Positions 3,001 through 55,979 of a stretch of DNA of 64,000 nt are shown here, piece by piece. Under the pieces are notes generated by a model. It was not told where the DNA came from. It saw only the letters and a list, made by a program, of their open reading frames with translations, and made no database searches. The DNA comes from Cyanophora paradoxa CCMP329 (lineage: Eukaryota; Plantae; Glaucophyta). The stretch covers positions 38,581-102,580 of the forward strand of contig QPMI01000278.1 in NCBI GenBank assembly GCA_004431415.1. The letters run 5' to 3'. Within the stretch, counting starts at the first letter, position 1. The number at the start of each line of letters is the position of its first letter. Made by a program: the position numbers and the translations under genes.

Positions 3001-6000
3001 CGGCAAGGAAGGGAAGCAGATCAAACGAACAATGAGCGAGAACGACCCGCTCAAGGTTCTCGGCGTGTTCATGACAGTCGACCTCGACAGCCGACCCCAG
3101 ATCGACTACATGAAGGAGAAGCTGCGAGCGACCGCGGCCGTGCTCAGAACAAAGACAGTGTTCGAGGAGGAGAGCGTGTACCTGGTGAACACGCTGGTGC
3201 AGGGATTCCTACGCTACGCGGTGAAGATGGCGAAGCTCAGCGATGCAGACGTCGACGAGCTGGAGCGCACCTGGCGGTCGGTAGTTAAACACCACGCGGA
3301 GCTGAGCAAAAGCGTAACAAACGATATGATGACGTCGCCGGCGCCCTACGGCCTGTTCAACCTTCGCGCGCTGCAGCTCGAAGAACAGCTGACGACGCTG
3401 CTGGCGCAGCTGCGCGACACGAACAGCTTAGTGGGGAAGGTACGCATGGAGCGGCTACTGGCCCTCAAAGAGGCAATGGGAACCAACCTGAATCCGCTGG
3501 AGCAGACGGAGCTGGCCCGGTACCTTCAGAAAGAGCACCTGATGGCGCACACGATACACGTGGCGGGGCGCGCGGGGTACACGATCAAGACCACCCACCC
3601 GGACCTCGCCCCGGCCGCACCGGCGGACACGATTCAGAGCCACGTCCCGTCGCGCGACTACGCGAAGATGGCTCCCCACTTAATGGAGCGGGGACTCCTC
3701 CACGTAGCGCAGGTGAGGGCGCCGAATGGGACCCACCTCCTGCCCTGGAAGACCTGGGAAAAGGCAAGATCACGAGCGTGGAGCGAACCAGAATGGTACA
3801 GGCTCCTCCGAACGAACCTCTGCAAGGAGGGGGGCACGGAACTCAAACAAAGCCTGCGAGCGGCCGCTACGCAGTCAGTCTTCGCCAAGGGACACGACAT
3901 CCGACCTGGCACCTTCGCCCTGGTAGCCAACGACACACCAGGAAACGAAGAACTCGCGCTAGTAATGAGCACGAGGACGGACTCGAACGGAACGCAAGTT
4001 GCGCGCATCGCGCACTACGTACCCCGTGACAAGAACATTCAGGCAAACACGATCTGGGAAAAGTGCGACGGAACGTGCTGCTGGGCGAGGGAAGCGGACC
4101 CGGCGGACCCCGAAGTACGCAGCATGAACTTTGACCCCGAGACCTGCGAGTACGATGAGAGAGTAAAGGCGCTCTTCCCACTGTGGGGCGTCCGGTACGA
4201 ACGTCAGACGGAAACCGACAGAGACGAGGAGCGGCCGCCGCGGGTGCGCCTGCCCCCCGAGACCGAGGAGCTGAACGCCTGGAGGACGGGCGGGATGGAG
4301 GCGATAGAATCAGATCGCGAATCGGACATGAGCGAGGATCCCGGAGGCCCACCAAGGCCCGACGACGTAGACCCGCCGCAGGCGCAGGCTGCAGGGAGAA
4401 GCCGGTACCAACTGCGAGCCCGCGCAGCCCCAGTCAAGGAAGGGAAACGGGTGCAGAAGCAAAGCAAACGGAGACGGGTACAGCCGACCGCCAAGCGAGA
4501 GAGAGGGACGGAAGAGAACGACACTCGGGAGCAGACAGCGGCCGCCCCCGAGCCGGAGGATCCCGCCGAGACCGGAGACGAAGAGGAGGAAGCGGGCCCC
4601 GAAGCGCTGCTGGGAGCGACGATATGGCAGATCTACGAGATGCGTAAGGAAGCCATCCTGGAAGCGGGTACAGAAGGGATGCAGACCCGGATCGCCGAAC
4701 GCGAAGGACAGGAGGAGTACCGGATCGACTCCGACGGATCAACCTTCGACCTGGGCAAGGCCGGTAAGGCGAGAGCGGGGTACGCCGTATACGACCCTCA
4801 GGAACCGCACATGCAGTACGGTGGGAGGCTGCGAGGGCAGCTGTCCAATTATAAAGCCGAGCTACACGGGGCCATACTCGCGACGCTGATCGCACCGCTC
4901 AACAAGACGGTGAGGGTACACTGCGACAACCTCTCCGTCGTACGGAACTTCGCCACCCGGGTGCGATACTACAGGCGGAAGTCAGCGCGCAAAGACACAC
5001 GGGATAGCTACGAAGCAGAGTACCGGCTGTGGCGCGCGGTGATGGAGCTCCGCGGGGCAGGAAGGCGGGAGGACGCAGGAGTGGAAGTAGTGTGGGTGCC
5101 GGGCCACGACCCCAACGACGAGATCCACAAGGAAGTCGACCTGCGCGCGAAGGCAGCAGCGAACATGCCCCTCATCAACCCCACCACCGGCGAGCACATG
5201 ACGTACCGGGCCGACGTACTCGTACCCCCCGAGTCCACGGGCTTCGAGCTCATCCACCAGGGCGAGCGGGTTGAGATCGACCCCTGCAGATACATCAGAA
5301 TGCAACACGCGGTGCGGAGCTTCGTCAAGTGGACTCAACTGAGACGGACGGGCGAAGCCCTGCGGGACGCGCTCGGAAGCCCCAAGCAAGCGCTCGAGCT
5401 GCTGAGCGTCAAGTACTGGCACCGCAAGATAAGCGGTTACAGGCACAAGTGGCGGGCGCACGGCGTGAAGGCGCTGATCGACGGGCTGCCACTGATGCCC
5501 GAACGCCTGCGCGACCGCCCGGACCTATACGAGGGGAAGTCAGAAGGGGAGTGCCTGCGGTGCGCCGCGAGCGAGGCCAAACCCAAGGAGACGCTGCGCC
5601 ACTACCTGATCGAATGCCCCAGCCTGCCCACCGCTCACGCCCGCATCCAGAAAGCAGTTGACGAGGAGTTCCTGAAACTGTACGACAAGAAGGTCGTGGG
5701 GGCGGCGCGCAGAGCGCTCGACGCAGCTGAGGAGGCGAAGGAGCGGGCAGAACGGTCAGAGGGCTCCGAGCAGGCCCCGAACGCCCAGGCCCGAAAGCGC
5801 AAGGCGGCGCACCTCGAGCAGCCAACCAAATCGGTGGAACAGGCGAGCCTCGACCTAGAACGCGTCTACAAGGCGCGCCCGGTAGCCGAGAAGAGCCTGT
5901 CGGCGAGAATGCGGTGCTACGACTTCAGCCGGAGGTACGCGCACGCGCCGGAGGCGGGCAATAGCTATCCGGGCGCATGGCACGACATGCAAGGCGAGCA

Positions 6001-6631
6001 CAAGGGTTGGCGCAGCGCGCACGACCTGGATCACATGCGAGTACTCCAGGGCCTGCTGCCGAACGACATGGACAGAGTCTTAGTCGACCTGGGATTCGCC
6101 GAAGCAGAGACCATACCGGTCTGCCGGCAGCTGGCGGAGACGGTGCTCACGGAAGTACACAGCGAGATCTGGAAGCCGAGAAGCAAAACAACGAGCAAGC
6201 ATGAGTCCCGAGTGTGGGGGATCACGCAGGGAAGCAAGCGCGCACCGAAGGGGAACCGAGCACCGACGGTTGGCAGCGAGGCCGACCCAGATGCTGCAGG
6301 AGGACATCCCGAGGACGCTGCTGGAACGCCGAGCGCGGCAGAGGTCGGGGGAGCGACAGCGATGCAAGAAGCGGAGAATGAGAACCGGCCGGATTCGAAC
6401 CCGCCCGACCAGACTCGAATTCGAAAGCGAAAACGCGAACTCGAATCGCACCGTATCGCGGCGCGGGAACTCGATCGGATACGCGGGGAGGGCCACTGCG
6501 ACCACTGCCACGAATACCACGCCCCGGGGACAGCGTGCCACGAGACAGCAGTAGTGGAAACGCTCGCGGCGCGAGCTTTCAAGAACTACCTGAGGTACGG
6601 AGACATGGGGCGACTGCCTAAGGTATCGTAA
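36..6631 (+). CDS. LINE ORF2 polyprotein (APE-RT-RNase H-CCHC), split by one frameshift near 2725
   Basis: ORFs 36..2789 and 2747..6631 join if one C is added to gacccctgctgc, giving FYDPLLHAQDFVANKM...FADD. Single-base loss in a C run (mutation or sequencing error). Confidence 0.9.
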
Positions 6632-16600: not shown

Positions 16601-19600
16601 ATGGGCTCCGGCGCCAGCAAAAGCAAATCCGCGGCCGCCGAGGAGCTCGAGCTTCCGGTCGGTCACGAGACAGCGGCAGCTTCAGCTGCATGCGCAGCCG
16701 AAGATGCTGCGCCTGGCTCGGCGCCTGCAGCAATCGCAAGCGTTCGCGCATCCGATCCTCGATCGGATAGCGACAGTACGTATACAGCCGAGTCGAACCA
16801 GCAACGCGTACGCGTACGGCTCTACGGCATATGCGGGCCGGACGAGCTGCGAGGAATCGACCGGGTGGAAAAGGTGCAATCCGTGGCGCAGCTTGCGTGC
16901 CTGCTTCGGTCGGAGCGCGAGCGCGAGCAAATCAAAGGCGCGGGCAAGGACCCAGTCCCGGAGATGCTGCCGGCGGTCGCCGAGATGGAGCGCAGAGAGA
17001 AGCCTGTAGTAGGAGGGCTGAAGAAAATCTGCGAGGCTGGTGTGTGTGCGCGCGCAGCGCGCGGCGGCGTGACTGACCGCTTCCCTCGCGCGGCGCGCGA
17101 TGTCGACAGTGGTGAACGCCTTCTCTAACGAGCAGACACTGTGCGATGAGGGCGAGCTGACGGAGGTCGGCGCGCTGGTCCTCACGGGCGACCCTGACCT
17201 CTGCCGCATGGTCCGCATCCCCGGCCCGCGCCGCGCGCCCCGCCGCCGGCGCGCCGACGCGCGCGCGCTGCCTCAGCTCGTGGATGCGATCGTCAGACGG
17301 GCGGAAAGGGCGCACCTGAAGGACCGGGCAGCACTCTCCGTGCTGGCGGCCCTCGTGGGGCACCTCCCCCCGGCCACCCTCTTTCCCGAAGACTGGAATA
17401 GACTCCTCGCCTTCAGCGCAAAGCAGGCGAGCGCGCCGCGCCGCGCCGCCGCGGGCGGGCGCGGGCGATGACGGCGGGCGCAGGTGACGGGATTGGACGC
17501 GAGCAGCGTCGACGCCCAAGTCTCCCTCGCGCTCACCGCCGCCGTCCTCGCCGCCGTCGAGTCCATCAAGGACCCCGACGCCTCCTCCGCCGGCCCCTCC
17601 GCCGGCCCCTCCGCCGGCCCCTCCGCCGCCCACTCCGGCGGCCCCTCCGGCGCTGCCGTCGCGTACGAGGCCCCCGCCGCGGCCGCTGCAGGTCGGCACG
17701 GGCGCCCCTCTCGCAGTGCCGCCCGACCCCCGACCCGCCTGAGCGCAGGGGATCGCGATCAGCTGCTGCTGGGCTCGAAGGATGCGACGTCGCTGAGAGA
17801 AAAGCTCGAGCATCTCGTGCAACAGACGCGGGAGAAGAAGCTTTGGCGGGCGGAGGCGGCGGCGGTGCTCGCCAGGCAGGCGCTCGTGGGCGTCGCTGAG
17901 CGAGGCGAGAGCTTGGGGGACTGGGTTCGCAGGGGCAAGGCCGCCGGTTCGAGCCCCGACTCGCCGGCCGCGCGCGCACCGCCAGGCCTGGCCACGGGGC
18001 CTCCGATGGCGCAGGGGACTTAGAGCTTGCCGCGCAGGGCGGATCCTGAAGAAGCTCTACTCGGTCGGGAAGGTCATCGCGGGGGGCATCTCCTCGATGG
18101 GCGCGACAACCGTCATCGACCTCCTCCTGTGGTTCAAGGTCCGCCGGCCGCGGGCTCGAGCTCCCGTCTGTGACAGCTTCGGCGTTGACGGCCGGGCAGG
18201 ATCTAGCGACTGAAGACGAGAAGGGGGGCGCCCTGGAGGCCGTACGAGAGCTGTGGAAAGACGTCCGCACCGTCGTCGGCAGGGATCCGCAGGGCGAAGC
18301 GCGGCAGGACTGGTCCGCCGCGGAGCTCGTGGGGACGTGCGGGGCGTACGCACGCGCTCACGCCAGGGGTGCAGGTACGGGCCGGCGCGGCTGCTGGGCC
18401 TGGTGGCGGCGAGCGGCCGGATCGCAGATCTGCAGGACCTGTTGACCAGCCGCGAGGGCGAGGACCGCAAGGCACGCCTCGACGCCTGCGCGACCTGCCG
18501 CCCTCTCGCCCTCGCCCTGGCGTCCGCCCTCGTCAACGTGCGTGCCCGTCCTGCACGCTCCTGGAGCAGCGCTAGCGCGGCACGGCTGCGGACGTCCGCG
18601 GGGGGGCGGGCAGGTCGCGGAGGGTCGAGACGACGAGCAGGCGGCGGCGGCGGTGGATCTGCTCAACCAGCTCGCGCTGCGGGCGGAGCAGCTCGGCGGT
18701 GCAGACGGAGTGGAGGTAGCGGCCGGGGCCCTTGCGCACGTGGCGAGGATGCAGGGCGGAGGAGGCGTGGTGCAGGAGGCGAGGGCGGCGCTGCAGAAGC
18801 TGGCGGAGCGCGTGGCGGCGATGCAGCTGCAGACGACGGCAGTCAACGTTGGCTGCCTCATGTCGTTCGCAAGGCAGTCGAAGGCGGCCGCGAAGCGCGC
18901 CGCGGGGGTGCTTAGCTGCGCTGGCGACGCCATGGCAGCGGTTGGCATCGACGGAGGAGCGCAAGTGGCAAAGTTTGGGGAGACCGTTCAATGCGCCCTG
19001 GACAACGAGCATGTGAAGAACGTGCTGGCGGCTGTCAACGCCATCCACGGGTCCGCACTGCAGCTGTCCAGAGGCTCGTCCTCTCGACCGCAGGTCCCAG
19101 AGCTGCCGCCCAACCTCCCTCGGGCTCTGCAACTCGTCGCGGCCCCGCGTGCACTGGCGGTCGCAGGTCGGGCCGTGGGGGGCGAGGAGCAGGGAGCTCG
19201 AGGGGGCGACGGGGACACGGCCACGGGGGCGCGAGCCGCGGCGAAGTTCAGGCTCAACACGTACCTTGCACGAGCGCTGAAGGAGTACGAGGACGCGGTG
19301 CGGCCCGCCGACGTCGCGATCGCCGCTGCGATGCATCGTCTCTGACGGGCGCTCGCGGCGTCGGCTCCGGAGCAGTTGGCCGCCTGGATGCGGTCCGCGT
19401 CGGCAAAGAGCGTTCACATCCACGGGCACGAGGACGACATCAACAAGGCCGAATGGATCATCAACAGCCTCTCCGACAATCTCTGGTGAGACGCCCGCCG
19501 CCGCCGCCGCTTCTTCACGATCACGAGCCATCGCAGCGGATCGACTCGGCACTCGCGTCTTCGCGGCTGCAATAGCAGCTGCATGGGGACGGTCTTTGTG

Positions 19601-22600
19601 CTCGTTGCGGGCTCCGCGACGGTCCGAGATGCCACCTGCGTAAAGGCTGTCGATGAGGGTGCGGCGGGTCGCCCGACTCGCGCCCGGCTGGCCCATGCCA
19701 CCTTCTCACAGCGCCTGCAGCGATTGAGGCCGGGCACGATGTCTTCCAGCTGTACCCAGAAGGGGCGCAAACGGCGCTGCAGCTGTTTCCGGATGGCATT
19801 GAAATGCGCCTCAGTCGCTTTGTACACGTCCGCCAATTTGCTGTTAATATTGCAGGCGCCGCTCTTGATACAGTTCGCGCTTTAATTTTTCTTCCCTGCA
19901 GCTGGATACGGATGCGGATGGATCTCCGGAACCCGTGGAGGCTTTTCTGAGCGCCGTGCAGAGGGCCTACTCCACACCCCGGCCAACGCCCTCGCTGGCC
20001 ACCAAACCGCTGTACCAGTGGCAGCCGGCCAGCAGCGGTGGAGTGCAGCCGCAGCCGCCCACGGGGGCACCTGAGTGGGTCCTCGCGGAGCCTGCAGCTG
20101 CTGCCCGCCTGAAGGGCACGCGAGTCTTCTTTTGCCACACAACGGCGCCCGAGGATGTGGTGGCCGTTCAACGGCACATGATCTCTCTGGACGCACATGC
20201 CAACATGGCCTGCTGGTGCCCCCGCCCCCGCCGTCGCGCGCAACGCTCGCCCATGCAACCGTCCTGTCCTGCAGGTCCTACGTGGAGCACTGGCTGAAGG
20301 GCGAGCGCTGGGTCGATGTCGGTGCGTGCGGGCGACTGCGCTCACTATGCCGCTCATTTCTTCGTATGCACCGCTTGCGTCGTGCAGTGGCCCGGGCTAT
20401 CCGCAACTGCACACACTTTGTCCTCGCCGTCCCCCCCAAGCTTCAGAACCGCCAGCTGCGGGTGCATCCCCCCTTTCTGAGCGATTTCACCAATCGCCCA
20501 ACGCCACAGCAGCACTGCGAGGAGGAGTTCTCGTACGCGTGCAGCCAGAACTGCTGGCTCGTCGTGCTGCACCTGAAGCAGCAGGGGCCCGGGGGCGGTA
20601 CGACACGCAAGGACGTCTCGTGGATCAGCAAGCACCTCGAGCGCGTGCCGCCCGAGCGCGTGCTCACGATTCCGGCCTCGTCGGACCCGACCGCGCTCGC
20701 CCGCGCCCTGGGCGCCGAGCCGCAAGCCGCCGGAGGCCACGCGGCCGCCTTCGAGCGGCGGGTGGAGCTGGGCGCCCCTCCCTCGGAGGTGCGCGCACCC
20801 TCGGCCCTTCAGTTGCCCGGAAGGCCAACGTGTCATGCAGGCAGATGCACTGCGGTGGACCGAAGCAGACGTCTTCAACTGGGCCCGCTTGCAAGAGCCC
20901 CTCGCACCGTGCGTCTCGCAGGGGCGCCGGCGGCACTGCACTTCTTGACCATAGCCGGTAGTTTTGCGGGGAAGCTTTCCCTTCTGAACGGGAGGAAGCT
21001 TCTTTCACTCTCCGACTCCGCTCTGGAACAGCTCGGCTTCGATCAGGTCGCAGCGCGCTGGTATCTCCTATCGAAGATTGCCGCTCTGTCCAAGCTCGCG
21101 CTGGCCGGCTGTGACAGAAAGGTGCAGCGAAGCTATAGAGTAGCTATAGTGATGGTCGACGTGAATATTAATGCTGCAGCTGACTCCGCAGTGCAGAAAG
21201 AGGTGCTCTGCTGGACTGAGGAGGAAGTGGTGGAGTGGGTGAAATCGATCGGAAGTCTCGCGCAGTGAGCGCCAGCGTTGCCAGCGACATCCCAATCTCT
21301 CTCGCGAGGCTCGATGCCAAGCGCTCGCGATCGCAGGTTTGCGGGGCTCTTCTCCATGGTGTCGGGATCGATGCTGCTCTCCCTCTCCAATGCGGACCTT
21401 GGGCACCTGGGCGTGGCGAGCTTCGCGGCTCGGCAGCACCTGCTCCAGAAGATTGCCGGGCTCGACCCCGGGCCCCTTCCCCTTCCCTCTTCGTCAGAGC
21501 CCGCGGAGGCGACGCCGGCCAGTGAAGGCAGCACGGGCGGCGCCGCGGGCGTTGTGGAGCTCGACGAGCACAGGGCGCTGGTTCAAAATGCCCGCACCCC
21601 GCGCTGCCGTCTGCCCTTCTAGATCTGCACCCCCAGACTCACATGCGCGCGCCGCAGTACGCGAAGGCGGTCTCCGCGGAGCTCTCGCGCGACCAGGACC
21701 TGGCGCTCTACGTCCCGCCCCTCGCCACGCCGGACCCCAAGCTGCGCACGCCGCCCGAGGTGCCCCCCATCAAATCCGAATCCGTTGCCACCGTGTTCGC
21801 AAGGCGAGCGCTCTGACCACGAGCTCGGACCGCAGGACCTGCACGAGGCGGTCGAGCGGTTCCTCGCGGCGCTGCTGCCCGGCCAGCCCCGCGGCCCCGA
21901 GACGAAGCGCGTGCTCCTGCTCCTCGGCGGGGCCGGCACCTCCAAGAGCACCTTCCTCCGCTTCCTGCACCGCGACGCCTGCGAGCGCTGGGCGAGAAGC
22001 GAGCACCAAGGCGCCAGCGGCAGGCGCCTGCCGCTCGTCTTGCACGTCTCGCTGCCGCAGCTCGCCGGCGTGACTGGCGGCGTACAGACAGGGCTTCGCA
22101 AGCACGTCGAGACCAAGCTCGGAATCGCCACAGACAACCTGCAGCTGCCAGCGCTTCGAAAAAAGTGCTCGCCAGCGCGCGCCAAATTTTAGACGAGCTC
22201 CGCTCTTTTGAGCTGTAAAGGGGGCGTCAGGTTCGGGCTCGTCCTCCTGCTCGACGGGTACGACGAAATGGGCACGATCGCGACGAATGGCATCAATCTG
22301 TGGCAAACAAACGGCCTGTCGGGGTGGGCAGACGGCGCCATCCTGGCGTGTAGAACGGAATTTCTTGCGTCTCTGCCCAAGAACAAATCGCCCGAGGTGA
22401 CAGACTCTGAAAGCGCTAGCCGCGGTCTCTCGAACTCGCGCACTCATAAATTAATGAACAATAGGATTGCTTTGCGCCTACGGGGGAGGACAGCAAGCCC
22501 GCCGGCGCCGTGAGAGGGCTGGCGCAGCTGCACACTGTTCTTTTCGACGGGCGGCAAGTGCGCGGCATTCCTCCGATGCCTCGAATGGCGATCGCGAGCT

Positions 22601-25600
22601 CGCTCCTCGTGATCAGCGACACGCGAGCGCTCATCGAGATCGGGCGCGCAGCGGGAAGCATACCTGCGGCGGTACGCGCAGCGCCACGCGGGCGAGGAGC
22701 GCGCCTGGGGCTTCGAGGAGTACGCGGACGTCTTTGGGAGCAGTCCGCATCTCGCCGACCTGGCCGAGAACCCATTTGCCCTCTCCATGCTCGCCCGCGT
22801 CCTCCCCTCCATGTCCGCGCCCCGACTCGAGGCTGGGGCGCCTTGCGAAGAAGTCCGTCGAAGGGCTCCGCGCGCAGGGCGCGGACCGGCGAGCGGCTCC
22901 GGCTGCGCGACCTGTACAGGCTCTTCCTGCGGGACTGGCTGCTGCGGGAGCTGCACCGCGGGGGCGTCGACAGACAGCGGGATGAGCAAGGTGCGCGCGC
23001 GCGCGCCAAGGACGCTCAAAACGGCGGCCTGACGTCCCGCGAGGCTGGGAGGCGGCGGAAAGCGCCTTCGTCGACGACGGAACCGAATATTGCAAGCGCT
23101 TCGCCTCCCACCTCTTCCGCGTGAGCTCCGTCCCCGACTCCCAGACAATTGCAACTTGCATTGAACTAGTACTTTACGTGTCCGCGCACGTGCAGATGTC
23201 GGCCAGCCAAGCGACGATTCAGGACGTGGACTTGAGAAAGCGAGAAAGCGAAAGAGGAAGGACTGACGCTTCAAATTCGAATTCCGCGCTTGAGCAGCCT
23301 GCTCTTTTGAGATTGCTGGCCGACTACAAAAGGGTTTTCGTGCGGAACAGCTGCCCGCTGCGGCGGTGGCGGCTGGGCGACAGGCTCGGCTTCGCGTTCG
23401 TCCACAAGACGCTGCAGGAGTTCCTCTCCGCAGAGGCCCTCCTCGATTCCGTGCGCCAAAGCCGCCGGCCCAGTACTAGTCGCCTCACCTGCCCTGAAAA
23501 ATACGTTGCGTGTATGCGCAGCTTAAGCTTCGAGCTTCGGCATCAAGCTTAAGCAGCAATGATTCGAATGATGGTATTGCTTTTCACACGCGGTGCGCTT
23601 TTCACACCAGCTAAAGATTCGTTTTTGGAGCGCGACTGACTGCGGGTCAGTTCAATTGCCGGAGACACAACGCTGGTGCGCTTTCTGGTGGACGCTGTGC
23701 ATGCTCATGATCCCAGCTGCAAAATAGACATTGCCGAGGTGCAAAGATGCGCACCGCGGCAACTTATATAATTAGCAAGTCTCTGTGACGATTTGACACG
23801 CGGCCGTGCTGTAGGCCCTCTTTGCAATGATCTCCGGGAGTCGGGGCGTGGCTGAGGATTCAGCGGAGGCGATGGCATCCTCAAATGCGGCCACTGTCCT
23901 CGTCGCTGGTCTGTGCATGCCCCGGGCCCCTCTGTGGAAGCGTGCAGCCTTTGATGACGCCTACCCATATGCATGGTCGTGAGCAGCCCACTGGTCCTTT
24001 GCGCGGAAAGACCTGCGCGGAGTCCGAATGCGTGGGGCAAACTTGTGGAGATTGGAGGCCGGGGGAGCGGATTTGCGAGGGGCCGACCTCCGAGGCAGCG
24101 CCCTGCACGAGGCCTGCTTCGAGTATGCAGACCTGCGGGGGGCGCGCTTGGAGGACTGCCAGGTTCGGACGCAGCCGGCAATTGTGTTGCGCAGTCCAGT
24201 CATGTCTGTCGCTTTGAGTAAGGTGCGCCGCGACTTCTCCGGACTCACCGCATCTATTGATCCTATTCCGATCATGAATTGAATTCACCGCCTCTATTGG
24301 ATTAGTGACAATAAATTTCAACGAATAGTGATTAACAATCTACGGAAACTAGCCGCTGACTCATGATCAGTGAGCGGGGCTGATAAGTGGGGCTGGACGG
24401 TGCAGGATGGGCGGCGGATTGTCTCGTGTGGCGAAGACGAGAAGCTTCGTGTGTGGGACGCGGAGACGGGCGTGGAGCTCACAACGGTGCCGGAGGAAGG
24501 CATTGATATCGGCGCCGTAAACTCTGTGGTGATGTCGGCGGTGCGTGGTGGATGGCATGCGCAGTGGTCCGCAAAGGCGCGATGCGTGATGTAACTGGCA
24601 AATCGGGCAGTTTAGGCTTTTAATTTGTTGGGTCCCGAGAAGCTTCAGAGTGCCCGAGCGAGACGGGGCTGCTCACGGCGTTCGGGGCGGGGCGGCGCAG
24701 GACGGGCAGCGCATCGTGTCGGGCAGCGGTGACAAATCGGTACGGGTATGGGACGCGGAGACGGGCGAGCAGCTGCTGCTGTTGGAGGGGCACGAGAAGG
24801 CTGTGCGTTCCGTGGCGATTTCGTCGGTGCGCCGTCAGGGTGGGGTATATTTGCATGGAATCGACGTCGGGTTCATGGTGCTGGATCATGGAATAGGGAT
24901 GGTATTTGCAAAGATCTAGAAATGCGGGCTGTCGGGGCCTTGACCAAGCTTGAGACTGCCGTGCAGACGTGCGCGGGGCAGGAAAAGCGCAGGCTGACAG
25001 CCGCCGCCGGGCTGCGCAGGACGGGCGGCGCATCGTGTCCGGCAGCAGTGACAAGTCAATCCGGATCTGGGACGCGGAGACGGGCAAGGAGCTGCGGAAG
25101 CTGGAGACCGAGGGGCACTGCCGCCCGGTGACCTCCGTGGCAATATCTGCGGTGCGCGGTGGGATAATGTGTGCAGAGGAAGCCGTGTGGCCATGGTCTT
25201 GAGAAGAAACGTTAACAGGACTGTGCTGATGGCGAGTACAGAAGTGTTTGACTGACAGCCGGGCCGGGTTGGGCGGCGCAGGATGCGCGGTTTATCGTCT
25301 CTGCCAGTGACGAGGACGAGTTCGCGCTTGTATGGAACACGGAGACAGGCGAGCAGCTGCAGAAGCTGCAGGACCACAGCGAACGAGTCAACTCCGTGGC
25401 GATATCCGTGGTGCGGTGGGAGGTGGGGCACGGGAAGTGTCCCAGTCGGCACCATGAGCCAGCCAGGCATCATAAGCCAGCCAGCCAGCCAGTCCTAGAA
25501 ATCGATTCTGCATAGAACTGGCGGCTCAAACAGCGTCTATGTAAATGGAGGGGGGCTCCATTGGCGGCGCAGGACTAAGCAGCACGGCGCAGGATGGGCG

Positions 25601-28600
25601 GCGCATTGTATCAGGCTGTGGAGACAACTCGGTGCAATTGTGGAATGCGGAAACGGGCAAAAAGCTGCAGCAGCTGCAGGGAAGTTTCCTTCCTGGATCC
25701 GGCTGTGCAGGCTCCGTGACAATATCGACGGTGCGTGGCAGGATTCGGATGTGGGGCATCGGGTGGTGGGGCAGCGATATCAATGCATATGGTGTCGCGC
25801 GATCGGAGGCAGCTGCACGAGAGTGCGGCCACGGGTAGCCTGGCAAGTCCCTAGAGCAAGCGAGGCGAATTAAGAGCCGTACTATGGTAACAGGCGCGGC
25901 TGACAGCAATCGTGGTGCTGCGCAGGATGGGCGGCGCGTTCTGTCGGCCAGCGCCGACAACGCTGTGCGAGCGTGGGACACAGAGACGGGTGGGGAGCTG
26001 CTGCACTTGCAGATGCACGACGGATTCACCGGTGACATTAACGTGGTACGAAGAATGTTGACCTCCGTGGCTGTATCAGAGGTCCGTAGCGCGGTGTTCT
26101 CAAGCCTGAACATGTGAGATGAGCGGAGCTAACATACAAGGCGGCGCGAAGCAGGATGGGCGGCGCATTGTGGCAGGCTCCTACGAGGCCGTCGAGAAAT
26201 CGGACTTCGACGTCGACTCTTCATTCAGCCGGCCAATTTGGGAGGACATCGGTACAGTGCGGGTGTGGAATGTGAATCCAGACGAGGAACTTCGACAGCT
26301 GCAAGGCCACAGCAGCACGGTTAGTGCCGTGGCAATTTCGACGGTGCGTGGCAGATGAATATATATATTAGAAGGACGGGGCTGCGGGGCTGAAATCTGG
26401 GGTGGGGCTGGGTAGGACGGGCGGCGCATCGTGTCGGGCAGCGGTGACAAGTCGGTGCGGGTATGGAACGCGGAGACGGGCGAGCAGCAGCAGCTGCTGC
26501 AGGGGCACGAGCAGGCTGTGGATTCCGTGGCGATTTCGTCGGTGCGCCGTCAGGGTGGGGTATATTTGCATGGAATCGACGTCGGGTTCATGGTGCTGGA
26601 TCATGGAATAGGGATGGTATTTGCAAAGATCTAGAAATGCGGGCTGTCGGGGACTTGACCAAGCTTGAGACTGCCGTGCAGACGTGCGCGGGGCAGGAAA
26701 AGCGCAGGCTGACAGCCGCCGCCGGGCTGCGCAGGACGGGCGGCGCATCGTGTCCGGCAGCAGTGACAAGTCAATCCGGATCTGGGACGCGGAGACGGGC
26801 AAGGAGCTGCTGGAGCTGCCGGGGCATAATGCCTCCGTTTGCACCGTGGCAATATCGAACGTGCGTGGCTAAAGGCGTGGCACGGAAGGACTGGGCACGC
26901 GTCACAGCGAGTATATAATACAGGACGGCGTGCCGCAGGACGGACAATACATTGTGTCCGGTGACGATGATGGTTCGGTGCGGGTGTGGGCCTTGGAGAC
27001 CGGCGCGCAGCTGCATCACCTGCAGGGGCACGGAATCCACCGCGTCAGCTCCGTGGCAATATCGGCGGTACTTTGTGGAATTGAAGGCGTTGTTATAATA
27101 TTTTAATTTGCGAAGGCGTGATTCCGGAAAGAAACTAGCTATAGTAAATTCACAGGCTTTCGTTGGTTTCATTGGGTTCGGAGGGGGCTCATGATCATGA
27201 TCATGATCAGTGGCTGTGCCATGGGCCAGAGGGGCGCGCGCGGCGAGGCTGATCATGACCCCCCCATGGCCACGCCGCATGTGCAGGATGGGCGGCGCAT
27301 TGTGTCGGGCGGCTTTGACAGGTCGGTACGGCTATGGGACGCGGAGACGGGGGAGCAGCTGGAGAGCTGGGCTCGCGATTCCCATGTACACTCCGTGGCA
27401 ATATCATCGGTGCGTGACCAAACCGGGGCGTTGGTGATAGTCATGGCATGGGGTGCGTGCAGAATTCTCGAATGGAACAGTTGAACTAGGAATTCGAGGT
27501 CTAGAGCTGCGACAAGCGATATCGATTGGGGGCCGTTGGGCCGGGCCTTGACGCGCTTTGGCGTGTCGCAGGACGGCGAGATCATTGTGTTTGGTACCGA
27601 CGGGGTGGTGTATATGTGGGTGTGGAATGCCGAGACGTTCTGCCCATGGCGCTTGAGACGAAAACTGGAGGGGCACAAAGGAGTGGTGTTCTCTGTGGCA
27701 ATATACGAGGTGCGCACGCGGAAGACGGCGCGCTGTAGTTAGACGGCGGTGCACGCGAGAAAGGCAGGACTGATGGTCGGGGCCGCGCGGCGCAGAAAAT
27801 GTGGCGCATCGTGTCGGGCGGCTCCGACCAGACTATTCGGGTGTGGGACGCAGAGACGGGCGAGCAGCTGCAGAAGCTTCAGGGAAACGGTCCGGTGGCC
27901 TCCGTGGCGATTTCGATGGTGCGCGGGCCGGGGAAGGGCGGGGCTGGCGACAGGAAGGGCATGCGCGGCAGGCCCGAGACCTAGGGAAACTGGGGCAGAA
28001 TCTCGCCCGCCAAGGCTGCACATAAGAGCTCGCGCGAGGATGTCTGGACTGACAGTGGGCCCGGGGCTGGCCATGGGCCGCACAGGATGGGCAGCGCATC
28101 GTGTCAGGACACTTCGATGTGTCGGTGCGGGTGTGGGACGCCGATCGCGAGGTGCGCAACACCTCTAGGGATATCGATGGAGCTCGGTTCCGGAACTCGA
28201 ATGGCAGATCAATTGCAAAACAACTGATCATCACCTTTCTGCGTTCATGTATCCAGGAGTTCGATGAGAAGACGGTGGAGCGCCTTCCTCCAGGTTTTGA
28301 ATATGGGGCTACAATCAAAAAGGTTCGTCATTGTATCCGGGGTCAAACGCAACGAATACGTTAAATATAATTATAATTAGCGGCTACCAGTACCGGACCA
28401 TGTTGCAATTGATATCAGATACCGCTAGCGCTGATCAACTTTGGCGCAGCCATACATAACCACGCGACGCATCCAGCGCAACGCCCAGCTTGAGGCCCGT
28501 GGCGCGTGGCTGCTCTCTAACGATGTCGAAAAGGCAGAGGAACGCATTCGCGAGGCCGTGGCCAAGCACGCCCAGGTGAGTCGCGGCACCTGTGCGGTCG

Positions 28601-28788
28601 CGCGGTGCCCGCCGTGTTGGTACTGCCCGCCAACGCTCGCGTTTGCGCTGCGCATGCAGCATGCGCAGATAAAGACGAAGTCGGCTTTGGATGGGCTGAT
28701 CATGTGGCGGCTGCTACCGCAGCTCGGCGTCGTGATCGGGCACCTCTCCACCGCATGCCCTTCTAAACCCCCTGGCCCCCCACTATGA
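16601..28788 (+). CDS. NLR-like STAND protein: myristoylation motif - helical/ARM-like region - TIR - SAM - SAM - NACHT-like ATPase - pentapeptide repeat - 14 WD40
   Basis: [11 protein letters not shown]: RVFFCH..ACW|[14 protein letters not shown]|[25 protein letters not shown] (~20120-20720). SAMs: [11 protein letters not shown]|[25 protein letters not shown] and [11 protein letters not shown]|[25 protein letters not shown] (~20840-21460). NACHT-like: [60 protein letters not shown] then [14 protein letters not shown] pentapeptides, then WD40 exons. Joining of the 16601-19485 part is inferred. Confidence 0.85.
17584..17650 (+). repeat. Coding 12-bp tandem repeat (SAGP)n
   Basis: ccctccgccggc, about 5 copies with the last ones degenerate. 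Confidence 0.85.
24406..28151 (+). repeat. Array of single-repeat WD40 exons, all phase 0
   Basis: Exons 24406-24540, 24701-24826, 25020-25151, 25282-25410, 25593-25730, 25926-26081, 26155-26343, 26416-26541, 26735-26860, 26939-27067, 27287-27409, 27572-27709, 27796-27918 and a half exon 28086-28151. Consensus ag|[19 protein letters not shown].|gt; every length is a multiple of 3. Confidence 0.95.
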
Positions 28789-29217: not shown

Positions 29218-29597
29218 CGGCGGAGTCCGCAGCGTTGCAATTGCGGCGCCGGCGGCGAAAATTAAAGCACAGCGCTATAGCTAGCATATACATGCGCATG
29301 CGCATGCGCAGTCTTGCGCGCCCGGCCCTAGCTTGCAGCCTGGTCCATTAATATTACGTGTACGTATATACTAATTATATATATTTTTTTTTTTGGTGAA
29401 TTACCGGCCACAGTCTCTAGACACCAGCACTGCGGGGGCTGCCCAGGGGGCATAGAGACAAAATAGCAAAATAACTAAGACAAGAGCACGAAGAAAGATA
29501 AGACAAAGAGCCAAAATCGACAATAAAAAAGGAAAGACACAGAGCTCGAGACAGATCGATTGCGAGAAGAGACGATAAATCGAGCAGATCTAGGGAC

Positions 29598-29663
29598 AGA
29601 GGATAACTGACACGAAGAAGAGCCAGAGCTAGAGGATAACTGACACGAAGAAGAGCCAGAGCT
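29598..29663. repeat. 33-bp tandem duplication in the LINE 3' region
   Basis: agaggataactgacacgaagaagagccagagct x2. Confidence 0.9.
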
Positions 29664-30892
29664 AGAGATACCATCAATATCAGAAGGAATTACATCACTA
29701 AGAAGCGGGGACAAAATTGAGAAAGATAAATAACAGGAAGAAGACAAGTAAGAGGAACAACAAGACGACATGGAGGCGGAGGCGAAGCAGGACGATGCGA
29801 AAGGGCAGAGCTACGGCACGAGGTCGAGGAGGACACAGGAGGCGGAGCAGGCGGATCAAGAGCAGGCAAAAGAACAGTCAAAGGAATCACTAAAGCCGGC
29901 CGGGGTCGAGGCGGGCAATCGAACTGCAAACGACGGCGAACAACAGGTCGAGCACGAGGACTATAGCTAGTATTGAAACTAACTCTAGCATCAACACTAC
30001 GATCAGAATCCGAACCAGACCGAACTAAACTAGAAGACGAAGAAGTACGCCGGCGCCGGCGGGATACGATCGCGACCAGCGAAGCAGAAGACAAGGACAA
30101 AGGCGGTAGTCCGGTATCAAGAACAAAGGCCGGAGGGTCCGGCCCGGCAAACCGCCGGGGGGAAGTAGAAGGAGCCGCAGGCTCGGCAAGCCGGCGACGG
30201 GTACGACCACGAGTCCGGAAGGAGATCGGGGAAGCCGGTCCCGGAGCTGAGGGCCCAGGAGCAGAGCCAGGAGAAGGTAAGCCCGGCGAGAAATCTGACC
30301 CGGAGCCGGAACCCAGCGAACGACGACGACGAAGAGGCCCCCGAGGAGCCACGACGGGGGAGCTACCGAGCAAAGTACTGACAGCCGGCGCCGAACACGG
30401 CGGCGGAGGTACCCCGCAGACAGTGGCAGGCGGAGAGTCCAGGGTCGATCGAGAGATCCGCCGACGGGAATGCGGCGGGGGCCGACGAGACGGAAGAGGC
30501 GAGGAGGGGCCGAGGAAGGGTCGGAGGCAGGGGAAGGGCCACGAGCAGGTGACGGGGATCGCTGCCGGCGCCGAAGAGAGGGCAGCAAAGCAGGAGAAAG
30601 GTCGGGTGGCGCCGGAGCAGATGACACGGAGGTCATGGCCATGGGCGGTGCAGAGAGAGACGAGCTCGAGGGCGCAAGGGCCCGACGAGGGCGCCGGCGG
30701 CGAATCTCACGAGCGCCAGGAAGCGGGATAGGACCCGCAGATGGGACCCGAGGCGCCGAAGGGGGAGCAGGGAGCCGGAATGACGGGGAGATCGAAAAGA
30801 GGACAGTCTCGCCAACACTCGGAAGCGGGGCAGAGGCCGAGGACCCGGAGCTCGAGGGGGGGAGGGAGGGCGGAGGAGGAGAGAGGAGGCGG

Positions 30893-33420
30893 CTATTCGA
30901 AGGGTATGGAGAATCGAGAGCGGAGGCGAGGGAGGCCGAAGTGATGGCGAGCTCTGGAGGCGAGGGGGCCTGCAAGCGGATCCGGGAAAGTGGATGCAGA
31001 CGCAAAGAGACCGGGGACGTAGAGGCGGGAGGGGCATGCAAAAAGATAGTGCCGCCCAGCGTCACAGTTGCAGAAGCGGGGCAAGAAGGATGGGCTGAAG
31101 AGGGGGCTGAACCAGGAGGACGTCAGAAAGAGGGCCTCGCAGGGGCGGAAGTGGAGGAGCAAGGGGAAGAGGTAAGAAGGGGTATGGAGCTGCAAGATGA
31201 CCAGGGACCTGCCGGGGAACAGGCAAGTGAAGAGGCCCCGTGACAGCAAGTTGTAAGGAGGGAGGAGGCAGAGGCGGGGCCAGAGGGCCAAGGAGCACAG
31301 GGATCGGGACCGCAGGGAATGGGGGAAAGGAGCGTCGAGAGGGGCAGCGAGAGCAGGAATAGGAATGGGCCCAAGGGTCACTACAGGGGCCAGAGCAGGA
31401 GGGGACGGCGCAGGAGGCGGGCGACCACCAGGGATCCCCAACGGGACATTCCCACGAACGGCAAACTCCGCAGGATTCCGGAGGACAGAATCGATGTCAC
31501 GCGAAGAGACGAGGTTGTCAGCACCGCCCGAAGAAGGAGCGCCGGACGAGTCAGAATCAGAGCTTGAACTAGAACGATGAGAACCGGTACCAGACTCTGA
31601 ATCATGTGCGTCATCATCCGAGGCAGCCTGATCATCAGCGTCAGCAGCAGCCAAGCGAGCGCGCCGCTCCTCCAACAAGGCCGAAGCCTGCGAAAGGGTG
31701 AACTCGAGGTACGACATATTTCTGTCCCAGGCGGCAACAAGCGCGGCGCGGTTGTAAGAAGGCGCATCAATGTCAGCCTCCTCAAGATCGCACCGAGCGC
31801 GAGCAACCTGTTGGATGGAAAATACGCCAGCAAGGATCGCTCCAAGTGAGCGAAGGCAGAAGGCGGGGTTAACTTTACTGCGCAAAATGGGCCCAGATAA
31901 ATCCGGAACCGAGAGGATGTGGAAGAGAGAGAGCTCAGGCACTGCGACCTCTTCACGCTCATCCGGTGGAAGAGTAGAAGCCCAGAAATTCAGGCGCTCA
32001 CGAATGAAATCCCAGAACGAACGAGAAAGCGGGCACTCAGAGAAAACGTGCGCGTGAGAGCGAGCAGATCCGTCATTACAAACCCGACAGAAACGACGGC
32101 GGGGCGACTGTTGCTCGCCCAAACGATACAATTTGAAATGCAAACGGTAAAGAGCATCGATCCAAAGCATCGGGAAACACTGAAGGACGACAAGATTAGG
32201 AAGACGGGACGGAGACAAGGCGCCGGGAAACCCCCACTTAGCATCGGGCATCTGAGCGTGGCTAGACACATCGCGAAGCCGCTGGACCTCAAGGCAGTAG
32301 AAGCGACGAACAGAGGAGAGGCGGAGAGGGAGCATACGAGCGAAAGTGAACGCAAGATTATCAAGAGAAAGAAAGGCCGAAGGGCCTGCGCCAAGAACAA
32401 AAAGGCCAGGCAGGGTCCCGCGACGAAGAGAGAGGAAGACAGCGCTGAAGCAAACATGCAGCGGGAGCAAACGGGACAGAATTGAATTGGAGCTCGAGGA
32501 TAGGCCCACAGGGTGGGAAGCCGCAGGGCGGCAAGGAACGCGCGGTATGTAGTCCAGCACCCGTGGAATTATCTGGTTATCGCGAACAGGGAAGGCAACA
32601 AAAGTACCACTTGGGCCTCGAAGGAGAGCAAACGAGGCGTCCGGTCCGGACCACCAGAGATGCTGAGGCGGCGATGCAGGGCCTCGAGAACCTGGCGCCA
32701 AGTAGCCGGGAGCGCAGAACACAGACTAGGGAAAAAGGAGTGGAGGGCGGAGGAGGCAGCTGCTGGAGCCCGGAACCCCGGGCAGCACAATCCCAGATAT
32801 CGCAGACCCGCAGCAAGCCGGACCGTGCACAGCGACTCCAGTCGACCTCGTCGCCGGGAGTACTGAACAGAGGATTGAAGAAAAGAGGTTGGGATAACAC
32901 TTCGGGAGAGTTACGAGGTTGACACACGCCCTGGCGCTGAGCCCACTCGGAGAGAGTCCGCTTCCAAATAGGAGGCAAGTCAAGTCTGTCAAGTGGGAGG
33001 CGGAGCGAGACAAGGGCGGGGCCATAGGAAAAAGGTGCCAGCTGAGCGTCCAGTTTGCTCAAGAGGTACTCCTTCCAAGGAGCTGAACAAGAGGGGTCAG
33101 CGAGCAAGGCCACCCACTTCATTTTCAGCGATAACGAAAAAGCTCGAATATCCGGGCAGTTGAGACCACCTTGACGCCACGGCAGAGGAGAAATATACTT
33201 CGAAAGCTGCCCGCTCACGCCAGCAAAAGCGCGAAGCTTCTCTTGCCATGTCGAATACTGAGCATCAGGGGGGTCAAGCAAATATAGAGCATAATGTAGG
33301 GACCCAATAAATACAGCCCAGGCAAGGAGAACGCCGGAACGCATCGGCATGCGATAAGTCTTCGCTTGCTGGACACGGATATCAAGAGCAGCGGTCTTTT
33401 TCCGCCAGAACCGAGACAGA
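30893..33420 (-). pseudogene. Frameshifted C-terminal half of the LINE ORF2 (no RT core)
   Basis: Three frames must be joined (shifts near 32775 and 32685): ..DIWDCAARG/FRAP..LPATWRQVL/..WWSGPD..zf-RVT. Confidence 0.8.
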
Positions 33421-34023
33421 TCGGGCTCTAGTAATTATACAGATCGGGCTCTACTAATTATATATAAGTTAAGTACTAGTTAACGTTATAATTATGTACG
33501 TATACTTGCCGCGCCCGGCGGCCTTAAGCTTGCCGCGGCGCGCGCGCCCTCCAGCTCGGCTCTCATTCGAATTCCGTGTAAGTATCGCTCTCATGATCAT
33601 GCAGCACGCGGCTGCGAGCGGGGTCCGGATCCGGGACTCCGGGCGGGAAGCTTAAGGGAAATATATTAATAGGCTTACGTATACAGGGCCCCGGGCGACG
33701 GCTGAACGTGGCAAATCCGGAGATCCTCTATAGCTAGATCTAGATCAAGACTCTGAGAGCAGGGAAGGGAGGGAATCCGAATGAACCTCTGCAACAACAA
33801 TGAATCCGAATGAACCTCCGCAGCACAGACTGCGCGATGCTCGATGCTTCCGCATGCGCCCCAACACGCTATATGGCACAGAAAGCGCTGAACTGCTGAA
33901 CTGCTGGTGAATTGAAGTGCCTGACAGTTACTCGAGCCGAGCTGTTATCTCTATGGGTGGATGAACCTTGGTGAAACGAGCTAGAGGTGGGCGCCCCTGG
34001 GGGAGGGGGCGGGGGGGCCGTCC

Positions 34024-41394: not shown

Positions 41395-41537
41395 CTAGCT
41401 ATAGGGCCTGTCACAATCGCGAGTCTTGAAGGCGAAGGGGCGGGTGATCTGCTGTTTTTTGAGGGGGCGGGGTACCGATCTCTGCCGCAATTCGATCGTC
41501 GGCCCGAGCCGGTGCACGGCCCTGCGGACGAGAGGCG

Positions 41538-43535
41538 ATGGAGCGCACGGTAGCCAGCGCTCCCGGCAAGGTGCTGGTGACGGGCGGCTACCTGGTGCTG
41601 GAGCAGCCGAACGCCGGCCTCGTCCTCTCCGTCGGCGCGCGCTTCTACGCGGTCGTCGAGCCGCTGCGGCCGCCAGTCGAGGGCGGCGCCGCCGTGCGCG
41701 TGCAGGTCCACTCGCCGCAGTTCGAGCGGCGGGACGCGTTCGACTTCGATGGCGTGCGGCTCGTCCCGGCGCCGCCCTCGTCGCCTGGGCCGCGGAACCG
41801 CTTCATCGAGTACCCGATCTCGCACTGCCTCGCGCTGGCGCGGTCGTCGCTGGGCGAGGCGCGCTTCCGCGAGCGCTGCGCCGGCGGCCTGGCCGTCACG
41901 TTGCTCGGCGGCAACGACTTCTACTCGCACCGCCTCGAGGCGCGCCGGCCGCGCTCTGCGCTGCGTGATCGCGCCTCTGACCGCGGCTGACGCCGGCCCA
42001 GGTCGAGCGGCGCGGCCTGCCCCTCTCCTCCGAGTCCCTCGCCTCCCTGCCGCCCTTCCTGCCGCCCGACCGCGCCCCCGACGGCGGCATCGTGAAGACA
42101 GGCGCGACCCGCCGTCGCCGCACCGCCGCATCTGCGCCTGCGCCGGGGCTGACGGGGCGGGTGGACAGGGCTGGGGAGCTCGGCAGCGCTGGTGACGGCG
42201 CTCGTGGGGGCCCTTTTGCAGCACTTGGGACTCGCCGACCTCCCGTCCCCCGAAGGGCCCCCCGCAGGCCGCCCCGACGCCCACGAGTGCGCCGCCCGCC
42301 CGACGCCCGCCTGCCGCGCCGCACGCAGGCCGACGGGGGCGCGCGGGGCAGGGTGGCGCTGCGGCTGGTGCACAACGTGGCGCAGCTCGCCCACTGCCGC
42401 GCGCAGGGCAAGGTCCGCCCCGCGCCCCCGCGCCATCCCGGACCGCCCCGCCGAGCTCGAGGGGCGGGGGGCAGATCGGGAGCGGGTTCGACGTGAGTGC
42501 GGCGGTGTACGGCTCGCAGCGCTACGTCCGCTTCTCCCCGCCCTCCTCGACGGCCTCCTCGCCGGCCCCGTGCGCCCCGCCCGCCCCCGCCGGACCCGCC
42601 CGCCGCTGCGCCCCGGGGCGAGCGGGGCGGCAGGCGGAGGACGAGGACGCGGTCCCCGCCCCCGAGGCCCTCGAGGCCTGCCTCCGCCGTGCGCCCGCCC
42701 GCCTCCCCCCTCGGCCCCCCCTGCCCCCGCCGGCGCCGCGCTGACAGGGGCAGGGGAGTGGGACGGGGCGCGGGAGGGGCTGCGGCTGCCGCCGGGGCTG
42801 GCGCTGGTGGTGGGGGAGGTGCACGGCGGCTCCAACACCCCGGCCCTCGTCTCTGCTGTCCTCCGCTGGCGCGCCGCACGCTCCCCGGATGGTCGGGCCC
42901 GCCCCCCGCCCCGCCCCAGCCTCCCGTCCCCGCCCGCCCGGCGGCCGACGGGCGGCAGTGGAGAGGGTGTGGGGCGGGCTGGCGGCGGCGAACGCGCGGG
43001 TGGAGGCGGCGCTGCGGGCCCTCGAGCGGGAGGCGCGGGAGCGGCCCGAGGGGTACGCGGCGGAGCTGGCGCGCTGCGGGGCGGCGGTGCGCGGGGCGTG
43101 GGGCGGGGCGGGGCGCGTGGGGGCGCTGCTGGGGAGGCGTGGGAGGCGTTCGCGGCAGCACGGCCTTGCTGCGGGAGCTGGGGGTCGGGGCGGGGTGCCG
43201 GTGGAGCCGCCCGAGCAGACCGCCCGCGCCGACGCCGCCATGGCCCTCCCCGGCGTCCTCGCCGCCGGCGTCCCCGGCGGTCCGACCCGCCCCGCCCCGC
43301 CCGCCCCGCCCCGGCGCGGCGCGGCGCGGCTGACGGGCGCCCGTCTGCAGCGGGGGGCCACGACGCGCTGTTCGGGATCGCGGTGGAGGGCCCCGCGCGG
43401 GCCGCCCTGGAGGCGGCCTGGCTCGGCGCCTCCGTGTGCCCCCTCCCCTGCCCCGACGCCGCCGGCGCCGGCCTCCTCCGCCTGCCCCCGGCCGCCCTCC
43501 CCATCGACCTCCCCGGCCCCGACGCCCCCTGCTGA
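41538..43535 (+). CDS. ERG8: Phosphomevalonate kinase (ERG8/plant type)
   Basis: SAPGKVLVTGGYLVLE, KT|GLGSSAALV, AHCRAQGK|IGSGFDVSAAVYGS, GGSNTP, VPVEPPEQT, GVPG|AGGHDA. Confidence 0.93.
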
Positions 43536-43844
43536 CCCGCCCCGCCCCGCACCACGTGCACCCCGCCCCGCCCCGCCCCGCCCCCGGCCCTGCGCACGCT
43601 TCTTCCTAATAGAAGGTTCCTTCAATACGATTTCATCGAGAGCACAGGTTCTCTTTAGCGGGTTTACGATCTCTTTAAAAAGCGAAAAATAGGCGATTCG
43701 AAACGCGAAAGGTGACGGGGACGGGGGCTGCGCAGGACGGGTACGGAGAGCACTAGTACTCGTGGGGCTGGCGGGAGCGCGGGGAGGAAGGGGCCGCGGA
43801 TCGGCCGGGGGGGGAAAGGAAGGGGGGAAAGGAGCGGGGGGACG

Positions 43845-46895: not shown

Positions 46896-47272
46896 CCGCC
46901 CGTCGCCGCCGCCGGCCGCCCCGCGCCGCCCGCCCGCCGATACAAGGCGTTTACCCTTGTTTAGTAGCAAGTATAAGCAAGATATGTTGTACCACAGTAA
47001 TTGCAATTACGAAGTCTGCATCGACTGCGTTCGCGGGCTCGCGAGTGGCTCTTCACGCCCCCCGAACCCGAATTGGAGTTCCGAGCTCGAGTTCGACTGG
47101 AAAGATGCATATGCTCAACTTGGAAGAACAGTACATCTCAAAGAAAGCAGCGGCTAACGATAAAAGATCTAAAAGTGCAAGTGCCTACCAAAGCAACTAT
47201 CAAAGCAGAGCTAGCTCGTGGGACAAAGAGGGGGGGCGGAGGGTAGGGCGGTGGTTCGGGTGGGAGGGGCGG

Positions 47273-50496: not shown

Positions 50497-50550
50497 CCCA
50501 TCCCCGGCCCGCCAGCGCACCATTCGAAATTCGCGCTCATTCTCGCTCAG

Positions 50551-53033: not shown

Positions 53034-53239
53034 TCGACGCTCGATTCTCGTGGTTGTTTCAAACTGCTCTAAACATTCACTGCACATTTCGTTATCACTG
53101 CACATGGTTGATGATCTCTTTCGCCGTCGATTAATTCGTTGTTTCCGGTTTTGAATTCATTTCAGACGTAGCTCAGAATTTTCCTCCAAGTACTCATGAT
53201 CATGATCCAGGAGTAAGCGTACATGTACAGTTGTGTATA

Positions 53240-55915: not shown

Positions 55916-55979
55916 GCTACTGGGCAGGAGGCTCAGCACCGAGGCTCAGCAGGCAGCAGTTTCCTCCAGCATTGATAGC

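Follow-up and report, generated by a model that had tools for sequence, protein, structure and literature searches.

The stretch of DNA analysed here, referred to as the window, comprises 64,000 nucleotides (nt) of the glaucophyte Cyanophora paradoxa CCMP329 (contig QPMI01000278.1, positions 38,581 to 102,580, forward strand) and contains an intron-rich STAND/NACHT-type, NLR-like gene of about 12 kb which ends in an array of WD40 repeats, one repeat per exon. Transcription of the gene was shown, and so was the splicing of its exons, one after another, into 14 WD40 repeats. Considering all the evidence, it is reasonably probable that the gene encodes an NLR-like sensor which is constitutively spliced and which, like the NWD genes of fungi, diversifies at the DNA level. 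The order of its parts is: MGSGAS start, helical N-terminal region, TIR-like region, two SAM domains, NTPase, pentapeptide repeats, 14 WD40 repeats and a short tail. The gene and its main parts outside the array are located as follows, in coordinates of the window:

16601..28788, + strand: whole host gene, NLR-like, STAND/NACHT type (collinear tblastn, exon model, RNA joints)
21338..21589, + strand: exon with the second half of a SAM domain (Pfam SAM_2, E = 2.7e-4, above the curated cut-off)
21836..22164, + strand: NTPase exon with the non-canonical Walker A motif GGAGTSKS (motif; weak Pfam AAA_16 match only, E = 0.007)
22231..22397, + strand: NTPase exon with the Walker B motif LLLDGYDE (motif and paralogue alignment)
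23987..24222, + strand: pentapeptide-repeat exon, whose 3′ end encodes the first WD40 half-repeat, strand a (Pfam Pentapeptide, E = 9e-12; RNA piece 23986-24220)
28257..28788, + strand: three C-terminal exons, 28257-28322, 28450-28575 and 28660-28788, the last with the stop codon (RNA joints, loose end matching 28660, exon model)

The tripartite order of N-terminal effector, NTPase and C-terminal repeat sensor was found in one spliced gene, on the basis of paralogue collinearity, the SAM match, and an open frame with RNA joints from the C-terminal part of the NTPase to the end. Cyanophora paralogues are collinear with the host gene from about 16830 up to the WD40 array in tblastn, and the exon model of 22465-28788 is open throughout, has canonical splice sites and reaches its stop at 28788. 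RNA support for the gene covers 22600-28599, and the RNA check extends upstream to about 22525, short of the N-terminal part (16601-21600); the start codon was placed from the sequence alone. The spliced model was compared with databases exon by exon. The Walker A and B motifs are those of a P-loop NTPase, as in STAND/NACHT NLR-like receptors. In Walker A, Ser replaces the Gly that precedes Lys; the resulting pattern GxxG[TS]SK[ST] occurs in 13/13 Cyanophora paralogues checked, is not shared by the Mycoavidus and Dissophora relatives, and is a signature of the Cyanophora family. Pfam NACHT matched two paralogues, both below the cut-off, and gave no match on the split NTPase exons of the window. 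Pfam searches of the N-terminal stretches of the gene gave no match either. The MGSGAS start is a possible myristoylation site, and a long helical region is predicted within 16601-21600.

The array proper consists of the following exons, all on the + strand. The evidence for each numbered exon was the exon model plus RNA, except for exon 3 (exon model):

24406..24540, + strand: WD40 exon 1, 45 amino acids (aa)
24701..24826, + strand: WD40 exon 2, 42 aa; 91% nt identity with exon 8
25020..25151, + strand: WD40 exon 3, 44 aa; first 75 nt exactly those of exon 9, 3′ part not close to exon 9
25282..25410, + strand: WD40 exon 4, 43 aa
25593..25730, + strand: WD40 exon 5, 46 aa
25926..26081, + strand: WD40 exon 6, 52 aa; insertion in the d-a loop
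26155..26343, + strand: WD40 exon 7, 63 aa; 21-residue insertion in the b-c turn
26416..26541, + strand: WD40 exon 8, 42 aa
26735..26860, + strand: WD40 exon 9, 42 aa
26939..27067, + strand: WD40 exon 10, 43 aa
27287..27409, + strand: WD40 exon 11, 41 aa
27572..27709, + strand: WD40 exon 12, 46 aa, the most diverged
27796..27918, + strand: WD40 exon 13, 41 aa
28086..28151, + strand: last WD40 half-repeat exon (strands b and c), 22 aa, phase 0 (RNA joints at both ends, exon model)

The 13 internal exons (123-189 nt) are all multiples of 3 and encode one repeat each; single exons match Pfam WD40. Their length is not fixed, as only exons 2, 8 and 9 (3/13) measure 126 nt. The 14 array introns (72-219 nt) are all GT..AG, all in phase 0 and all placed between an SVAISx motif and DG, with the exception that exon 13 starts with KM. 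The layout proposed in the initial annotation, i.e. 13 full exons and two flanking half-repeats making 14 repeats, with every intron in phase 0 at the same repeat position (SVAIS/DG), was thus borne out by the exon model for 14/14 introns and by the RNA joints for 12/14. The word formed by acceptor plus exon start had 10 matches versus 0 in 100 shuffles; GTGCG donors occur at 12/14 array introns, and branch-point-like words precede most acceptors. A six-frame profile search returned just the 13 exons and the half-repeats, with no spare, inverted or dead repeat exons. Apart from introns 2 and 8, which belong to the copy tract described below, the array introns share nothing beyond splice signals. 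According to the standard WD40 strand order (PMC1805685), the sequence of each exon corresponds to strands b, c and d of one blade plus strand a of the next, that is, to one sequence repeat and not to one blade, so that the intron lies in the loop between strands a and b, at a distance from the variable face. Two cryptic upstream acceptors were seen, at 25573 (intron 4, which would cause an immediate stop) and at 26924 (intron 9, which would add 5 residues in frame); at both introns the RNA joint uses the distal site. Small dispersed repeats lie in introns at about 27187-27217 and 28385-28419, where several DNA contigs enter or leave.

Concerning transcription, 12/14 array joints appear as GT..AG joints in RNA-like contigs from three studies, while the DNA run shows no spliced joint in the array. 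The RNA nature of the runs is a program's guess, supported by these joints being GT..AG and absent from DNA. For introns 2 and 8, the contigs show only loose ends, which correspond to the start that exons 3 and 9 share. In all, 21 joints were reported, as many as the exon model has resolvable introns (21) in the stretch examined; 15 of the joints are listed singly, and the other 6 are most likely those of the six upstream introns. No exon-skipping joint occurs among the joints listed from the RNA assemblies of the three studies, at depth 5-20, in contigs that drop rare splice forms and in which the joints 2>3, 2>9, 8>3 and 8>9 are indistinguishable. The alternative splicing invoked in the initial annotation found no counterpart in these data, and a splicing-based diversification of the array is unsupported. 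Nothing was found when spliced peptides were sought among homologues with exon 7 as the query, or when metagenome contigs were searched for the exon pattern with both splice sites. At 25088, one RNA-like contig (run X15) has a loose end in which 15 foreign letters, reading in frame M-E-T-G-A, precede exon 3. The same wording is found in one repeat of paralogue P0016, and the contig may represent the transcript of a paralogue, an artefact of template switching or a chimera between loci.

One recent copy event was detected within the array, involving two tracts:

24808..25095, + strand: copy 1, the last 19 nt of exon 2, intron 2 and the first 76 nt of exon 3 (288 nt against copy 2)
26523..26810, + strand: copy 2, the end of exon 8, intron 8 and the start of exon 9 (288 nt against copy 1)

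The copies show 1 difference in 288 nt, and the event is very recent, since they are almost identical. In exons 2 and 8, the 107 nt next to the tract contain 11 differences, 3 of them synonymous (Fisher p = 4e-6 versus the tract), and from codon 26 onwards the similarity of exons 3 and 9 is abruptly lost. From the last part of strand a, the tract runs through the intron and strands b and c into the beginning of strand d; it covers about one structural blade and stops short of the variable d-a loops on either side. Both its ends are inside exons, with the intron in the middle, which fits a homologous conversion or an unequal crossover that carried the intron along, not an exon-cassette swap. 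The possibility that the duplicated tract is an assembly artefact was rejected, because the contigs of the DNA run break at the tract edges and the tract is collapsed there into a single, deeper contig of 288 nt. The block between the copies had, in this one DNA run, a depth of 98.6 versus 99-107 in the flanks, and no rearranged joint was seen. All the DNA data sets listed carry one species label and share 0.98 of their words; most may be the source strain.

Exchange between repeats is also suggested by their phylogeny. In a tree of the repeats of the window and its paralogues, obtained by a quick method from 42 columns and weakly resolved, the repeats group by gene (28 label changes vs 79 when shuffled), and 10/13 window exons group together with a Shimodaira-Hasegawa-like approximate likelihood ratio test (SH-aLRT) value of 88. 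Clustering by gene is expected from expansion or homogenisation within genes and, together with the 288-nt tract, corresponds to the concerted evolution or repeat exchange of the fungal NWD/HET-E type. Of the recombination proposed in the initial annotation, the clustering by gene and one recent copy event are supported; an intron-mediated swapping of whole exon cassettes is not, as the sole datable event has both ends inside exons.

The initial annotation had pointed to variable exon interiors, and the variation turned out to concentrate at the recognition positions known from HET-E. In HET-E repeats, four codons were found to be under selection, and they flank two conserved residues, a Val in the d-a loop and an Asp in the b-c turn (PMC1805685). 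These motifs map the four positions to exon positions 34, 36, 10 and 12. In the window array, positions 36, 34 and 12 rank first to third in variability and position 10 ranks seventh, and the entropy at the four is 2.93 bits versus an average of 1.38 bits (p<1e-4). Enrichment of variability at the four equivalent positions was observed in all seven paralogue arrays (permutation p<=0.004). The loop insertions of exons 5, 6 and 7 fall in the d-a loop and the b-c turn too. A codon model of the window array gave omega values of 0.33 for the framework and 1.75 for the four sites (two classes versus one, p = 5e-12), and the same 13 sequences, with the limits given below, yielded site estimates of at least 5 at positions 33, 34 and 36. 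The indication of positive selection at the four HET-E-equivalent positions is suggestive only.

The mean pairwise identity of the repeats is 50% in the window array (best pair 83%), as against means of 72-83% in five paralogues. In paralogue P0023, the framework is 93% conserved and yet the four sites are variable. Apart from the copy tract, the longest identical word between units of the window array has 22 nt, and the median longest shared word 12 nt. The array thus falls short of the high internal conservation defined in PMC4986451 (85% identity over at least 100 aa). It is a diverged member of its family, probably older and partly individualised and not freshly homogenised, and not the best showcase of it.

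With respect to the propeller, the WD40 region of a paralogue was folded in place of the window array. The predicted fold of its 14-repeat region contains about 55 strands, with a predicted local distance difference test (pLDDT) score of 83, and matches the double propellers 2ymu and Apaf-1; the two 7-blade propellers inferred at the outset are thus modelled on a paralogue only. Among six paralogue models with long arrays, the repeat counts were 14, 14, 14, 14, 17 and 11, the model with 11 being probably truncated, and shorter models contain 2-6 repeats. The recurrence of 14 repeats, in the window and in 4/6 of the long-array paralogue models, suggests selection for 7+7 blades; it also suggests that skipping a repeat is selected against, and argues against free skipping. 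An origin of the array by whole-propeller duplication was considered and rejected, since the similar exon pair lies six exons apart, not seven.

The window gene is one member of an expanded NWD-type family of Cyanophora paradoxa. A search with the NTPase exon found 17 proteins among 1.8 billion representatives, and 9/10 of the matches looked up were Cyanophora paradoxa models. The Cyanophora paralogues carry TIR_2, SAM, pentapeptide and WD40 domains, their NACHT matches being weak. The best full-length relatives of a close paralogue outside Cyanophora were NACHT-pentapeptide-WD40 proteins of Mycoavidus and Mortierellaceae, with 25-29% identity over 97-99% of the query region. Five EukProt paralogue models contain inserted peptides exactly at the repeat boundary, which recur within and between genes; several of them end like a read-through acceptor or start like a read-through donor. 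These mis-predicted models indicate, as far as their sequences can be read in this way, the same intron position and the duplication of exon+intron units across the family. In five relatives, four fungal (Mortierella, Mycena, Serendipita, Flagelloscypha) plus Hondaea, no intron was found within the WD40 array, and 4/5 have introns elsewhere in the gene.

The following course of events may be proposed. In an ancestral repeat, one intron would have become fixed in the a-b loop, and the exon+intron unit would then have been amplified by unequal crossing-over, a process that by itself produces one phase and one position. New binding specificities would arise from DNA changes: similar repeats would exchange sequence by unequal crossover or gene conversion, and amino-acid changes and loop insertions at the top face of the propeller would add to this. 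The array introns would be constitutively spliced, and either passengers or a source of extra homology. Both the NTPase and the N-terminal TIR-like/SAM part would be switched when the double propeller binds a ligand. The immune role of the gene is inferred from architecture and homology.

Several points weigh against this interpretation. The immune role is putative, and the TIR-like part is assigned by homology to the paralogue TIR_2 region only, as Pfam TIR gave no match in the window exons tested. The omega of 1.75 departs from neutrality with p = 0.035 only, in 13 short recombined sequences with 75% G+C at third codon positions (GC3) and a poor tree. The same surface positions vary in many WD40 proteins. 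The copy tract is a single event, the only recent one at the locus, and cannot be generalised; the 50% identity and the 22-nt longest word imply that current exchange at this locus may be rare. These facts lend themselves to a different explanation, namely that an old tandem exon duplication has become a frozen, fixed scaffold, with surface loops drifting because the constraint on them is relaxed, and that the 288-nt tract is a one-off accident. The low mean identity, long branches, loop insertions, short shared words and an omega only marginally above 1 at the four sites would all agree with it. It does not account well for highly conserved paralogue frameworks, such as that of P0023, varying at the same four sites, for the clustering of repeats by gene, or for so recent a tract, and is considered unlikely.

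Two other explanations assign an active role to the exon structure. A combinatorial receptor of the Dscam or brown-algal type, in which WD40 exons are skipped or combined to give many isoforms from one gene, would profit from every exon being symmetric in phase 0, and has a precedent in the isoforms of brown-algal ROCO and NB-ARC-TPR genes (PMC11378527); the depth of about 5-20, the loss of rare variants from contigs and the four inseparable joints leave some room for it. Still, the three RNA assemblies show no skipping joint, the splice sites look strong, there are no spare, inverted or dead exons, and skipping would break the two 7-blade rings that the recurring count of 14 fits, so this explanation is rather improbable. 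Even a little less credit is given to a dedicated shuffling of exon cassettes in DNA, programmed or somatic, with whole exons swapped through the introns. The identical intron position across the family, the intron families recurring within and between paralogue models, the centring of the sole recent tract on an intron and the RNA contig joining a paralogue-like 5′ piece to exon 3 (25088) could be read in its favour; against it are the location of both tract ends inside exons, the lack of extended similarity among the other introns, the even depth without rearranged joint of the block between the copies, and the fact that no recombinase or signal sequence was seen. Of the dedicated diversification system postulated in the initial annotation, the NLR/NWD-like context stands, while the single intron phase, an expected by-product of exon+intron tandem duplication, is not independent evidence for it. 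There is a small chance that the intronised array is an active generator of diversity within clones, through conversion of blade-sized tracts centred on introns, between paralogues as well, and/or through an induced skipping of exons. If this were true, a single-celled alga would possess a repertoire of variable receptors, comparable, with WD40 repeats, to the somatic diversification that has been proposed in brown algae.

Elsewhere in the window, a long interspersed nuclear element (LINE)-type element occupies 36-6631 (+ strand), with endonuclease and reverse transcriptase in one open reading frame (ORF) and RNase H in an overlapping second ORF. Just downstream of the host gene, at about 29400-33800, a purine-rich region contains long ORFs resembling retroelement remains; Pfam gave no match for the two ORFs tested. 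A cluster of F-box-like, LRR and RING-like ORFs (50431-58000) follows a tRNA-like sequence near 49520, and LRR was confirmed for 55980-56606. A fused PurK/PurE-like gene (47045-49609, - strand) and a phosphomevalonate-kinase-like gene (41426-43600, + strand) look like housekeeping genes by eye.

Returning to the favoured interpretation, a sensor diversifying in DNA, it can be compared with known systems. It shares with the fungal NWD/HNWD receptors (Podospora HET-E, HET-D and HET-R; PMC1805685, PMC4986451, PMC12222747) the NACHT-type NTPase with a 14-blade double WD40 propeller, the location of the variable sites, which are the same four positions of the top face in the d-a loop and the b-c turn, and the gene-wise clustering of repeats with exchange between them. 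In contrast, a phase-0 intron splits every Cyanophora repeat, while the five sampled relatives are intron-free in the array; the N-terminus is TIR-like/SAM and not HET, there is a pentapeptide linker, and Ser takes the place of Gly in Walker A; internal identity is 50% and not over 80%, and there is no repeat-induced point mutation (RIP) and no known allorecognition phenotype. So, it can be said that the window array works like HET-E-type sensors, yet lies outside the high-conservation class. The Mycoavidus and Mortierellaceae proteins have the same NTPase-pentapeptide-WD40 order, although in the Mortierella gene checked the WD40 array lacks introns and the N-terminus is ARM.

With the brown-algal ROCO-LRR and NB-ARC-TPR genes (PMC3341825, PMC11378527), the Cyanophora array has in common one repeat per exon, a single intron phase, what may be diversifying sites on the binding face and membership of a candidate immune receptor family. 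It differs in having WD40 instead of LRR or TPR, variable exon length, short introns without spare or inverted exons, and no alternative isoforms seen in three low-depth RNA assemblies. Cyanophora being a glaucophyte, both kinds of array are probably independent. The Tetrahymena LRR arrays of 90-bp exons (PMC6564038) are likewise tandem one-phase exon+intron units, which unequal crossing-over has expanded and whose number varies among paralogues; they differ by the LRR, phase 2, an exact exon length and thousands of genes, and are not described in that paper as NLR sensor tails. No description of a glaucophyte NLR/NWD family or of WD40 repeat-per-exon arrays was found in the open-access literature, and a passage of a 2026 review, where brown algae and Tuber stand for the exon-based cases, makes no mention of WD40. 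The known kinds of which the intronised WD40 form is a variant are the fungal NWD sensor and the brown-algal and Tetrahymena repeat-per-exon arrays. With this form, fast-changing sensors of the fungal NLR style reach as far as a glaucophyte, and WD40 joins LRR and TPR among the repeats arranged one per exon. Unlike intron-free fungal arrays, it offers introns as neutral markers beside each repeat, by which breakpoints and selection can be dated and mapped. The clonal growth of Cyanophora makes the question posed by brown algae, i.e. controlled somatic shuffling, splicing or plain unequal crossover, directly testable with long reads.

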